DNA of 64,000 nt from Phaeosaccion multiseriatum (GCA_965112735.1 OZ218952.1:1426001-1490000); one strand, 5' to 3'; counted from the stretch's first letter, positions 1 through 64,000 are shown. A program made the numbers and translations. The notes: generated by a model not told the origin, from the sequence alone.

Positions 1-3000
1 GAGTGAGTAAGTGAAGGAGTGAGTGAGTGAGTGAATGAATGAATGAATGAATAAGTGAGTGGGTGAGTGGTTAGTGGGTGAGTGAGTGAAAGAGTGAGTG
101 AGTGACGGAGTGGTGAGGGGTGAGTCGTGTGTGTGGCCAGGTTCAAAGGAGGCGGAGAGGGGGTGAGGGACGACCCACAATAGCACACTTACATACTCGC
201 GCACACACACACACACACACACACACACTGTCACGCACACACACACACGCCGCACACACACACACGCACACACACATAAGCACACACAGAGACACCATTT
301 TCGCGGGCAGCGCTAGCCTTCCAACTGCTGTCTCTGTATCACCAACTGCTGCTGTCCCGTGAGTGAGTACCGAGCACAGACCTGTCCGTCAAGCGAGCGA
401 ATGTCTCATGCTGCAGCCGCTGCTCCTCTCCGAGGCCGCCGAAGAAGCCACCCCTGTCCCCCCCCTCTCTCTCTCTCCTCCCCTCTGCGGCCGCTGCTGC
501 GAGCTTGGCGCTCTGAAACTCTTCAATCTCCACCAATATTTGCAGCTGAATATGGGGGGATGGGGGAAGCAGCAGCAGCAGCAGCAGTTGGTGATACAGC
601 AGCAACAGCACCCATCCGACAGAAGGGAGGGGTGAACAGGTAGACAGATTGAGACAGAGGGAGGCAGGGGGGGGGGGGAGGGAGAGGGAAAAGAGCGAGA
701 GGCTCAAAGCTCTGCCCTACCCCACTCTCTCACTCCCTCGCTCCCTCACTCCCTGACTGAGTGACTAACTGACTGACCGACTGCCTGACTGACTGACTGA
801 CTGACTGACTGACCTGCGCCAGGCAGGGATAGAGCGCGGAGCCGCCCTCGTGTCCGAGCACCGAGCTCATGGTGGAGAGCACATCTGCGGCATTTGGTGG
901 TACGACACAGAAGGGATATGAGAGGAAGGGGGCGAGAGCAAGGGGCAGGGGTAGTGGTAGAGGTCAAGACATCGCCCAGCACAGAAGAAGAGGGAGAGGA
1001 GAAGCATGAGCGAATGTCAGTTCAGACGTCGTGTGTGTGCGTGCAGAGCCTCGCGATAAGTCATCTGTACCATGAACTATGGACTACACTATGGACTACA
1101 AGGAACGTGTAGGGCCGCCCCGCCGTCATTGCCCCTCTCCGAGAGGGAGAAAGAAATCCATCACGCACAGGCACACAAACACACGCGTTCTGCCTGCAAT
1201 ATCTACCCGCCTCTCCACCAGTCAACCACCCCCCCCCTCACACACACACACACACACACACACACACACACACCCGTCATTCTTCGGTTGATTCCTGTAA
1301 GTCAATAACAGTGCCCCTCCTCGAACCCCTTCACCTCATCCCCCTACCCCACCCGCACCTCTTCTGGCTCTGTCCACAGCAGAGGCGAGCAATCCTTCGC
1401 TGCCCCTCTGCTGCATGGCGAGGAGAGCTGTGTACACGTGAGAGTGGAAGGACACCGCACCCACCGGGGGCGTCCGAGTGAGTCTGAGGGTTGCCGTATC
1501 ACCAACTGCTGTACTACCAAGTGCTGCGGCTCCAAAAGGTGATACAGCTGTGGACGAAGGCGGGGGCATGACCTCATCTTGCGAAGCGGCAGCACCGGCA
1601 GCGGCAGGGGCACCAGTTGGTGATACGCCAGAGGGGAGGGCTGCGTCCCACTCGAAGGTGCGCCAGGCGGTCTGCGCAAGATCAAGGGATGGCAGTGGAT
1701 GGGGAGAGGCGAGGAGAGGAGAGGAGAGGAGAGGGGGGGGGGGGGGGAGAGGCGAGAACGTGGGTCAGATGGCAGTGGATGGGAGCGGGTAAGGGGTACA
1801 CTGAAGTTGGAAAGTTGAGGTGTAATTCATCACCACCTGCTAGTCCCGGGGGTTTTCTTCTTCCTTCAAAGTGCTCTCTGTCACTAAAGAGGCGAGACCT
1901 GCAACCGCCCCATGTCTCCCTCTCCCTCTTCAGGCCCCTACTCCTCTCCTCTCCCGCCCTTTCAATCTCCCTCTTCATTGCCCCCTCCTCCTCTCCCCTC
2001 CTACTGTTCTCCCCTAAGCATCCTCCCTCTCCTCTGGCCCCTCCCCCCTCACCCTCCCTCTCACCTCAAACTGATACCCTTGAAGATTGGCACCCCCCAG
2101 CTCCGGCCCCGCTCCCCACATCCCTCCTCCCCCTCCTCTTCCTCCTCCTCCTCCTCCGCCTCCGCCTCCCCCCCATCCACCGACACCCCCCCCACCTCCC
2201 CCTTCCCCTTCCCCTTCCCCACCCCCCAGCCCCTTAAGGTAGCAATCCAATACGTGTAACATGCCCAGGCGCCGTAAGGACGACGCCACCCCTGTCTGCA
2301 GGTGCACTGAAACGGCCTGTTGTGAGATGGAGTTTGAGGGTGCGTGGTGCCTCTGGAGGGCGGCGTCGTAGGAGGGCAGAGCCTGTCGCCAGTCCGCCTC
2401 GTGCGTCTGAGCAGAGAGATTCATGGCAAGGTCGGTGCAGCCCACCACTGAAGAGGGAAGGGGAGGGAAGGGAAGAGAAGGGAAGGGAAGGGAAGGAGAG
2501 GGAAGAGAAGCGCAGAGAAGAGAACAGAAGAGAAGGGATTGCAAGATGAAGGGAAGGGGTGGGAAGGGAAGAGAAGAGAAGAGAAGAGAAGAGAAGAGAA
2601 GGGATGGGAAGGGATGGGAAGAGAAGAGAAAAGAAGAGAAGAGAAGAGAAGGGATGGGAAGGTGAAGGCAAGGGAGGGAAGTGAGAGAAGAGAACAGAAG
2701 AGAAAAGAGAAGAGAAGAGAAGAGAAGAGAAGAGAAGAGAAGAGAAGAGAAGAGAAGAGAAGGGATGGGAAGGTGAAGGCGAGGGAGGGAAGTGAAAAAG
2801 AGAGTCCGTGTGAGAAGTGCTGGCTGTGACGGACTCGAAAGAAAGCAGGCGCTGGAAAGAAGGGACGAAAGAAACGTAGTAAGAAGTAAGGCGCTGACTT
2901 GACTGGCTGACCTGAGGTAACTCCGTAAATGCTGTCTGGCTCAGTGAGGCTGCAGTGTTGCAAGAGGCGCGGGACAGACCAGTTGGTCGTTTGGGTGCCA

Positions 3001-61800: not shown

Positions 61801-64000
61801 AAGGCTTGTCGGAGGAGCTGACGGACCAAAGCACGGCCTGGCTGGGCACGGAATGGGTGCCCAAGGCCTATCGCAGGTGTGCACCCTACCTTACGTACCG
61901 TACCTTATCTTACCTTACGGAGATTTCGTAACCTTTCTCTTGCTTCACCCTACCCCACCCCCCTGCCTGACTAGCGTGCTGTGTGTGTTGGTCTGTTGGT
62001 TGTTTGAAATAAGTGGGAGGCTCTTGTGCGGTGCTGCCAGCTGTGATTATGATGGTGGTGTCCCCAGGAGCGCTGCGTGCCTCTCATGTCTGTCTTTCCC
62101 TTCCGCGTCCGCCTCTTTGCCTGCCTCTCTGCCTGCCTCTCTCTCTCTCTCTCTCTGTCTGTCCCTCTGTCTTGTCGTACCCTTCATCCTTGTGCGTGTG
62201 GGCCATCCCGTGTGGTGCCACCCATTGCCATCTATTGCCATCCTTGGGCCATCGACCGGTATGCTACTGAAAGGGTGCGGGCCCATGGCATGAGTACGTA
62301 CGCCTACATGGAGGGCTGTCCCAAGAACAGAGGCTGCACGCTGGTGCTCAGAGGCCCCGAGGGGGGAAGTAGCACCCAGGGGGGGGGCAGCACCCACGGG
62401 GGCAGCCTGACCGAGCTCAAGGCGGTGAAGCGGGTGGTGAAGCTGGCCTGCAACCTAGCCTACAGTCTGCGCCTCGAAGTTGCTTACCTCAACGACCGCT
62501 TCGCAAGGCTGCCCTTGCCTGCGCTCCTCAACAAGCCGGGCTCGGCGACGACAGTGGCGGAGGGGGGCGCGTCAGGGGGTGGCGATCATGGAGCAGGTAG
62601 TGCAGCAGTTGGTGATACAGCAGCGGGAATGGCAGTCAAGGGCGATGGTGATGGTTGGATGGCAGCCAATGGTGTGGATCTGGACGGCTTCCCACCCGTC
62701 CGCTCGGGCTCTCTCTGCGTGGACTTTGGGTCCCGAGACAGAGCAGAGCAAAAGGCGCACGCGAACAGGCAAGCGGAGGTTGCGCAAGCCGCCAAGATGT
62801 TAGGTAAGTGAGCTAACCTACCTATGTACGTACCTACCTACCTGTCTACCTGTCTACCAATCTACCAACCAACGTACCCCCTGCTACTCTTCTTGCTCCC
62901 ACTCCCCCTCCTCCTCCTGCTCCTTCTCCTCCATCCAACAACACCAACATCGAAACAACAAAACAACAGCAGCCCAGCAGCAAGCCCTAAACCGAACCCA
63001 CCCATCCCTTCCCCCCCCACCCCCCCCCCCACCTGACACCAGGCACTGCTGACTCGCACCTCATGTACAACTCGCTCCTAATCACTTCCCTTTGGATGAG
63101 CGGCCAGACGCAGTGCTGCCCTGCTGAAGTCAAGGGCATCCGCTTCTATGCCAAGCAGGACGTCAGTCTAGGGCAGTTCCTCTTGGACAGGTGGGTGGGT
63201 GGGTGGAGAGGGTCAGGGTGGGTTGGTGGGGAGGGTCAGAGGCGCGGGGAGGGAGGGAAGGAGGGAGGCTGGGAGGGAGGGGAGGAGAGGGAGGGTGGCT
63301 CTTGATAAAGTTTCTCTCTTCTTCCCTCTCTTCTCTTTCCTCTCCTCCTCTTCTTCTCTCTCTTCTCTCTCTCCTCTCTCCTTCTCCCCCACCCCCTCTC
63401 TATCTCTCCATCCTCCCCCTCTCCATCTCTCCATCTCTCCTTCTCTCTCTCCCACGCCCCCCCTCTCCTACATTTCTCTCTCTACTCTTGTTTCGCAGCT
63501 GCTTCAACACGTCGCTCAAGTGTCAAAATGTGAATTGCAAGCGGAGCGTCCGAGACCACGTGCTGTCCTTCATTCACAACGACGGTCGTGTGAACTTCAC
63601 TGTGGGGCGCCTCTCGGCCTCCATGAGCGAAATTGTTGCCCTGGCAAGGTCACAGGACGATGCTGCTGCTGCCGCGACTGTTGCGGCAGAGCTCGATGCA
63701 GGAGGAGGAGGAGGAGGAGGAGGAGGAGGAGAAGGAGAAGGAGCAGGAGGAGAAGGGGCAGCAGCAGCAGCAGGAGGAGGAGGAGGAGGAGGAAGCATGG
63801 CGAGTCCAGTACCAGTGTCACCGGGAGGATCTACGACAAGCTCTGTCCCCGCCGGGGCTTCTTTCCCTCCGGCGTCTGTGGACGGATCTGTAGACGCCCC
63901 TCCCATGCATGGACAGGTGTGTGTAGATGGCAGTGGATGGGAGAGTGAGTGATCCTGCCTCTTTGCCTCTCTGTCTGTCTTTTTGCCTTTTGACCCTCTG
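55845..64000 (+). CDS. FAB1: 1-phosphatidylinositol-3-phosphate 5-kinase FAB1/PIKfyve, 5' part; kinase domain lies beyond the right edge
   Basis: FYVE domain [41 protein letters not shown] domain [56 protein letters not shown]. Conserved region [22 protein letters not shown]. Start at 55845 inferred from a phase-consistent exon 1. Confidence 0.93.
59152..59390. repeat. (GGGCATGTGT)n 10-bp minisatellite starting at a FAB1 splice donor
   Basis: About 22 units immediately after CAG|GT at 59150/59151. Confidence 0.95.
59515..59741. repeat. Irregular CTCTGTCCTGACAC repeat array ending at a FAB1 acceptor
   Basis: Repeated CCTGACAC units; the last reads CCTGACACCAG|GTG. Confidence 0.85.

Follow-up and report, generated by a model that had tools for sequence, protein, structure and literature searches.

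A dispersed 15-16-nt word with GGATGG arms in a 64-kb genomic stretch of the alga Phaeosaccion multiseriatum

The window analysed here, 64,000 nt of the genome of the stramenopile alga Phaeosaccion multiseriatum (GCA_965112735.1 OZ218952.1:1426001-1490000), contains one gene on the minus strand at its left end and another on the plus strand at 57-64 kb. A preliminary description of the window had named them ATM and FAB1, respectively. The identity of FAB1/PIKfyve is borne out by a match to the PIKfyve chain 7k2v_A in the PDB (E = 4.7e-5). The ATM identity is more fragile: the exon at 2194-2454 (minus strand) matches in the PDB only residues 2034-2085 of human ATM, a weak match (E = 0.13) in which the exon stretch at ~2226-2433 aligns over the expected YLKGL block. 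Two short words recur in these large, intron-rich genes, motif A (CAG-TTGGTGATA-CAG) and the subject of this study, motif B, a 15-16-mer of the form GGATGG-CAGT-GGATGG.

Copy number and structure of motif B

Motif B was first noted as the 12-mer GATGGCAGTGGA. Counting both strands, as in all that follows, the window holds ten exact copies, on the plus strand at 1688, 1768, 6375, 7145, 8286, 13885 and 63926 and on the minus strand at 3121, 5997 and 16605, in exact agreement with the count and coordinates of the preliminary description; the variants noted there are real as well. Dinucleotide shuffles give an expectation of 0.04 copies, with none of 100 shuffles reaching ten, and Markov models predict 0.03 (orders 3-4), 0.09 (order 5) and 0.63 (order 6). 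Allowing up to two mismatches, there are 38 matches to GATGGCAGTGGA versus 8 expected; the 16-mer GGATGGCAGTGGATGG with up to three mismatches gives 30 matches versus 0.9 expected. Among complex 12-14-mers found at five or more loci in the window, motifs A and B alone stand out.

The window is very rich in simple repeats (289 rows in Tandem Repeats Finder), and a check against low-complexity sequence derived from GGAT runs had been called for; the excess of GATGGCAGTGGA persists under high-order Markov models. GGAT-type low complexity does not explain the enrichment, because the count is ~100-fold above the fifth-order expectation. Low-complexity composition in general does not explain it either, and motif B is not a head-to-tail run of a unit of 1-6 nt. 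Runs of at least three GGAT units give four matches at three loci (7154 and 7266 belong to one array), compared with at least 12 loci for motif B, and only one of the ten exact copies, that at 7145, has a (GGAT)n array beside it.

The conserved unit is longer than the 12-mer, as the 15-mer GATGGCAGTGGATGG is exact in nine of the ten copies. It consists of a hexamer direct repeat around a 4-nt centre, equivalent to 1.6 units of a 10-bp repeat. When the copies are aligned, information content peaks across 15 positions and drops to background within 1-2 nt on either side. A blastn comparison of the 250-nt flanks with the word masked revealed no common flank, the matches being physically overlapping neighbours and low complexity. 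An inverted-repeat scan of the window found arms of simple sequence only, and no target-site duplications were seen flanking the copies. There was no common tail after motif B and no shared upstream flank, the features by which a 5'-truncated retrotransposon without long terminal repeats (non-LTR retrotransposon) would be recognised. The possibility that the copies map to the end of a short interspersed element (SINE) or miniature inverted-repeat transposable element (MITE) had been put forward as a refutation; since the edges are sharp and the flanks unrelated, motif B does not represent the terminus of any longer SINE, MITE or introner. A search of the window against Rfam gave no matches at gathering score, and a tRNA scan gave no tRNA genes. 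The window does not include a chromosome end, where a telomere repeat could be compared with the word. An interpretation of the repeated arms as a footprint or target duplication was rejected, the centre not being palindromic.

Two minisatellite-like arrays with a 10-bp period are present, at 5984-6009 (2.2-2.6 units) and at 60902-60959 (with a CAGG centre), and most motif B loci hold only 1.6 units. The centres found in GGATGG-N4-GGATGG are CAGT (five times), CAGG (three), CAAT (two), CAAA (one) and two others. Across 16 independent loci the arms hardly vary, and eight of ten mismatches are at centre positions 8-10. The substitution G8>A, giving CAAT or CAAA, is common to four of the 16 loci (3581, 6084, 15965 and 62218-62242; corrected P ~0.003), and this recurrent centre suggests, from the sequences, a copied subfamily. 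None of the six frames of the word contains a stop codon, which is not statistically remarkable for a G-rich 18-mer. G-quadruplex prediction was uninformative, since the model was equally unsuccessful on a control whose GG runs have the same layout. Short arrays of a 9-mer that reads GGTAGTGGT on the G-rich strand occur at 6449-6472 and 8534-8563; the 9-mer resembles the motif B centre GGCAGTGG and may be a frame-preserving relative of motif B.

Contigs from four public runs of this alga were aligned to 5770-7135. Summed contig depth is ~15,000-20,000 in the bins containing motif B, versus ~500-1,200 in neighbouring bins. Loose contig ends gather at 5988/5994, 6009/6015, 6372 and 6389 (4 to 14 contigs each, in each of three same-sample runs), and the continuations past these ends agree no better than composition allows (agreement 0.46-0.61). 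Given the depth peak and the loose ends with unrelated continuations, the 18-nt stretch 6372-6389 is common to many other places in the genome with unrelated flanks. The copy at 6375 itself is covered without difference by unique contigs of three runs. Nearby, at 6578-6735, two haplotype contigs are distinguished over 158 nt by seven substitutions and an insertion of 4 nt (GCCA, after 6680), a divergence of ~4-5% within one sample.

Placement in introns, exons and along the window

The gene structure around 6 kb can be compared with a run designated X5. Its depth is confined to inferred exons and its contig edges at 5811 and 6296 are inferred donor positions, so the run appears, with some uncertainty, to behave like RNA. 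One X5 contig joins 6365 to 6570, omitting 204 nt that read GT..AG on the minus strand, which backs an acceptor at 6367; another stops matching at 7126 and backs an acceptor near 7124. The 204-nt GT-AG intron (6570-6367, minus strand) is preceded by a 33-nt micro-exon, 6603-6571.

Copies that read C-rich on the sense strand lie mostly a short distance upstream of inferred or candidate acceptors. In the putative ATM gene, where sense is the minus strand, these include the exact 15-mers at 13885..13899 (plus strand; 5 nt before the inferred acceptor 13880, with exon 13453-13878 directly after), 6375..6389 (plus; 8 nt before acceptor 6367), 1688..1702 (plus; 16 nt before the inferred acceptor 1672) and 7145..7159 (plus; at the edge of the (GGAT)36 array 7140-7285 and 21 nt before a candidate acceptor). 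A CAAT-centre variant at 6084..6098 (plus) precedes a candidate acceptor (6060) by 24 nt, in a region, 6046-6137, without X5 depth, and a complementary copy with three mismatches at 19097..19111 (plus) is 24 nt upstream of acceptor 19073. Upstream of acceptor 1672 there is an AG-free zone of 127 nt, and the following exon reads TAWRTFEWD; another exact 15-mer, at 1768..1782 (plus, C-rich in sense), lies 96 nt upstream of the same acceptor, with a branch-point-like CTGAC directly after it. Next to the copy at 6375, the complement of a motif A variant (6401-6415) gives a perfect branch-point-like CACTAAC ~40 nt upstream of acceptor 6367. The exact 15-mer at 8286..8300 (plus, C-rich in sense) lies midway along an inferred intron of 223 nt (8396-8174), where purine-rich sequence gives way to pyrimidine-rich sequence; AATCACCAAC, similar to the CACTAAC word, is found ~20 nt before acceptor 8174. 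A CAAA-centre variant with two mismatches, at 15965..15979 (plus), stands in a stretch that is pyrimidine-rich in sense. In FAB1, where sense is the plus strand, the C-rich copies are the CAGG-centre array of ~5 units (GGATGGCAGG) at 60902..60959 (minus), upstream of candidate acceptors, and two CAAT-centre units at 62218..62242 (minus), which precede a candidate acceptor of the CCT-domain exon by ~30 nt.

Copies that are G-rich in sense follow inferred donors. The exact 15-mer at 63926..63940 (plus) starts 10 nt past the inferred FAB1 donor 63917. In the putative ATM gene, the copy at 3118..3132 (minus; exact 12-mer at 3121-3132) starts 12 nt past the inferred donor CAG/GTGAGT at 3143, and a CAAT-centre variant with one mismatch at 3581..3595 (minus) starts ~36 nt past the inferred donor 3630. 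Two B-like units split by (GGGAT)3 at 19273..19312 (minus) start 18 nt past the inferred donor 19329, counted to the unit at 19298.

The preliminary description had also placed copies in exons, a claim that survives in part. The tandem copy with a 10-bp period at 5984..6009 (minus, G-rich in sense) is probably exonic and reads EDGSGWQW; the open reading frame (ORF) continues from a putative exon start. The exact 15-mer at 16602..16616 (minus, G-rich in sense) is ambiguous: a pyrimidine tract precedes it and the CAG within the word could be used as an acceptor, the alternative being the proposed exonic reading SMAVDGG (16605). The third proposed copy, GMAVKG (62628), shares only the 8-mer ATGGCAGT with motif B and is at best degenerate. 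It belongs to a FAB1 exon linker at 62624..62672 (plus), just after an exact motif A, where two degenerate B-like stretches are found, this 8-mer and a 16-mer match with three mismatches.

Motif B sits in G-rich tracts and is oriented as the tract. Its 30-nt flanks, read in the orientation of the word, contain G and C at fractions of 0.42 and 0.20, respectively, with G exceeding C at 12 loci, C exceeding G at one and three ties; their purine fraction is 0.61 versus 0.50 at random positions. The introns themselves are polar, as judged with motif B masked. The first 60 nt are strongly G-rich in six of ten inferred introns (GC skew +0.5 to +0.9), and the last 60 nt are C-rich in all six acceptor regions scored (GC skew -0.15 to -0.86), which are free of AG for 43-131 nt. 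Copies are thus G-rich after donors and C-rich before acceptors because introns run from G-rich to C-rich and the copies follow the G-rich strand. The best interpretation of motif B's polarity is that it results from this strand preference, and it is not evidence for a device acting at intron ends.

A single intron (19329-19073, 257 nt) holds both motif B and its complement. In the predicted minimum-energy and centroid folds, the 19097 copy pairs with 19274-19284 in a stem of 11 bp, although shuffled sequences fold about as well (z = -1.19). The copy at 3118 and those at 1688/1768 were also considered as the two ends of one intron; this pairing was rejected, the ATM FAT exon 2226-2433 lying between them.

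Along the window, all motif B copies with up to two mismatches are found at 1.6-19.3 kb and 60.9-63.9 kb, and none at 20-58 kb. Motif A shares this clustering (0-20 kb and 58-64 kb), with only two of its ten good copies in the middle. GGATGG sites occur at 1.3 per kb in the middle versus 1.45 per kb elsewhere, and G/C-rich tracts at 0.7-0.8 times their frequency elsewhere. Because potential targets are nearly as common in the middle, target availability does not explain the gap. It may be due to intron density or to local spread, and it fits a spread that favours nearby templates.

The proposal that motif B behaves like motif A is supported. Both have the same build, X-Y-X, with simple-repeat arms around a fixed centre and a length of ~15 nt; both occur as exact copies with unrelated flanks in introns and coding loops of the same regions, locked to the purine- or G-rich strand; and both contain CAGT followed by G, as had been pointed out. 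Motif B differs in having GGATGG arms in place of CAG, in a 10-nt payload (CAGT plus one arm) that does not preserve the reading frame, in being free of stop codons in six frames and, in this window, in lying mostly at intron ends instead of in exons. Motifs A and B occur within ~100 nt of each other in five places, four of which have both in the same direction. Their order varies, however, and they are therefore not two parts of one element. The preliminary description also suggested one recognition factor for both words; such a factor may exist, and invariant arms around a variable centre would be compatible with it.

How motif B may have spread

These facts call for a process that copies a discrete unit with fixed ends, needs a G-rich or GGATGG-like context on the same strand, and can iterate with a 10-bp period. 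We tentatively regard motif B as a dispersed repeat, a discrete unit of 15-16 nt whose copies are related by copying and did not arise by independent decay of GGAT runs. Judging from its build, it perhaps spread by microhomology-primed template switching on the arms, or by short-tract repair synthesis. On this model, a 3' DNA end halted within a GGATGG-like site would pair with the first arm of an existing copy, would copy the 10-nt payload and would return to its own locus via the second arm; a return out of register would produce arrays with a 10-bp period. Motif B would then lodge in simple-sequence tracts rich in G and take on their orientation. Its C-rich copies would end up inside the pyrimidine tract before acceptors and a few copies in G-rich coding loops, the latter being possible because the word is stop-free in six frames. 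Template switching entered through the arms also accounts for motif A (with CAG arms and a 12-nt payload), for the invariance of the arms and for local clustering.

Several points weigh against spread by copying. Long-distance template switching in trans is rare in known systems. We saw no flanking bases carried along with the word, as would be expected of conversion tracts of variable length, and no insertion event, empty site or presence/absence polymorphism of motif B, both haplotypes carrying the 6375 copy. Invariant arms around a variable centre also fit a binding motif with two half-sites. The recurrent G8>A change could be a mutational hotspot instead of the mark of a subfamily, and the regional clustering could simply follow intron density. 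The splice sites were inferred from consensus, ORF continuity and AG-free zones, only two of them having read support; no run is recorded as RNA, the nature of run X5 is a guess, and an intron-less allele from another sample is an alternative explanation of its contigs.

A functional element kept by selection is an unlikely alternative. In such an element, two GGATGG half-sites one helical turn apart would be bound by a DNA- or RNA-binding protein, and the word could act as an intronic G-run enhancer where it follows donors and as a pyrimidine-tract element where it precedes acceptors. It would agree with the contrast between arms and centre and with the proximity of copies to inferred splice sites at both intron ends. 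The C-rich form is 75% pyrimidine and lacks AG and GT dinucleotides, which suits an AG-free zone, and the CACTAAC word formed by the motif A complement beside motif B points in the same direction. Selection does not explain why an identical 15-mer occurs at many unrelated places, however, and it is improbable that a single protein would recognise the word as well as its complement in RNA. Of the copies, one is probably exonic and one lies in mid-intron, and the introns in the 38 kb between the clusters do without motif B. Finally, 41 kb of DNA from two relatives, a small sample, contains no motif A or B word with fewer than three mismatches.

It is quite unlikely that motif B is inserted from an RNA template, either as the extreme 3' end of a non-LTR retrotransposon that targets microsatellites or by some other reverse transcriptase whose template is short and fixed. 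Priming on GGATGG-like sites, with a microhomology stop at the first internal GGATGG, would leave the 10-nt payload, and this would account for the X-Y-X build, the fixed ends, the lock to one repeat strand, the tandem iteration and the exact copies across the genome. Microsatellite-specific long interspersed elements reportedly exist, and count in favour of this idea. Such elements resemble motif B in inserting into simple repeats at a fixed orientation, but for motif B neither longer copies nor variable 5' truncation was seen, and the search for shared sequence revealed no parent element. None of the copies in the window extends 5' into common sequence, no consistent tail follows the word, and no reverse-transcriptase gene was seen beside any copy. 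The strong regional clustering is also not expected of retrotransposition.

We consider it very unlikely that motif B is an intron-end device, whether as a terminal inverted repeat belonging to an introner, an intron-creating transposon, or as an RNA zipper by which the two ends of an intron would pair. The G-rich form after donors with the complement before acceptors, and the 257-nt intron that carries both with a predicted stem, would suit such a device, but a matched pair is present in one of ~8 assessable introns, the fold is unremarkable, and the distances to splice sites vary (5-24 nt before acceptors, 10-36 nt after donors). Introners and MITEs are likewise dispersed in introns with complementary forms at both ends; the introns here share the 15-mer only, without a common body, target-site duplications or matched ends in the same intron, and the word is about ten times shorter.

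The suggestion in the preliminary description that motif B crystallises out of GGAT/GGGAT microsatellites, which would happen repeatedly by mutation and slippage without copying between loci, is largely refuted and in our view highly improbable: motif B differs from (GGAT)4 only by AT>CAGT, and one copy adjoins (GGAT)36 and another surrounds (GGGAT)3, but loci with at least three GGAT units number three, against at least 12 for motif B, nine of the ten exact copies have no array beside them, the order-5 enrichment persists, the same two-indel change would be needed many times, and a centre variant is common to four loci.

We put forward a wider proposal with more reserve. Motifs A and B might represent an undescribed class of 'arm-guided micro-cassettes', payloads of 10-12 nt with common simple-repeat arms that spread without an enzyme of their own, entering and leaving via the arms during repair or replication, and that seed repeats, intron-end signals and coding loops throughout the genome. 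With a second, unrelated word of the same build, motif A is no longer an isolated curiosity but one of a class, which suggests that simple-sequence tracts of this genome generally receive copied units of 10-15 nt. If true, dispersed repeats could be made well below the size of any transposon, and the process would also supply intron ends with sequence (pyrimidine tracts, G-runs and even acceptor CAGs) and proteins with low-complexity loops. Haplotypes and strains of the alga differ by several per cent, so that recent gains should show as clean 10-nt insertions.

Known systems resemble motif B in part. Templated insertions made in polymerase-theta end-joining, and microhomology-mediated template switching, copy whatever lies nearby, each event being unique. 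The proposal shares with them a short stretch of template that is entered and left via microhomology; motif B differs as one fixed word that recurs across the genome. Dispersed minisatellites of the Jeffreys type have G-rich cores and form tandem arrays. Motif B is similar in its G-rich ~10-bp unit with a GGCAG core, its occasional arrays and its many loci, but consists mostly of solitary exact words of 1.6 units. In Eimeria, which offers the closest parallel found in the literature, CAG repeats and telomere-like heptamer repeats are concentrated, coding sequence included, in repeat-rich bands that alternate with repeat-poor stretches, and their function is unknown (Reid et al. 2014, PMC4199364). 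The scattering of two short repeat types through genes in bands is common to both; the Eimeria repeats, however, are tandem 3-mers and 7-mers, whereas motif B is a complex 15-16-mer and usually solitary.

Wider searches and the host genes

A literature search returned motif B words only inside primers, and no description of motif B or of the motif A 14-mers was found. A metagenome scan with the exact 16-mer gave at least 120 loci. Among the matches listed, nearly all loci hold a single match in unrelated contigs, many from gut metagenomes, and none contains motif A. These matches are at chance level, and the scan neither found the alga nor excluded its presence. The 16-mer occurs in several unrelated repeat families (L005, L025, L030, L046, L050, L075 and L071), including a dispersed element in Ga03075xx samples, and seven copies stand within the repeated unit of one 22.9-kb metagenome contig. 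The multi-copy L071 and L043 and the Ga03075xx repeat family were rejected as candidates, being unrelated elements that contain the 16-mer by chance.

Searches of Pfam and the PDB with most N-terminal exons of the putative ATM gene gave no relatives. The exon at 12704-13327 (minus strand) encodes 208 residues of globular appearance, for which HMMER found no relatives at E ≤0.001 among 1.84 billion representative proteins. A protein word search with the ORF 17570-19153 also found no relatives and was swamped by low complexity. In an amine oxidase search the nearest relative was from Tribonema (38% identity), with Tribonema and brown algae spanning 32-38%; the window's own proteins are absent from the collection searched. 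The CCT-like domain of FAB1 has, at 62352-62400, a G/S-rich insertion of 15 residues relative to human PIKfyve, within an otherwise alignable block. The ATM region also contains long, near-perfect microsatellites, namely (AAC)82 at 5518-5764 (100%), (AGTG)126 at 10473-10977 (92%) and (AGA)287 at 11656-12516 (99%), as well as a 50-mer repeated five times at 10053-10300.

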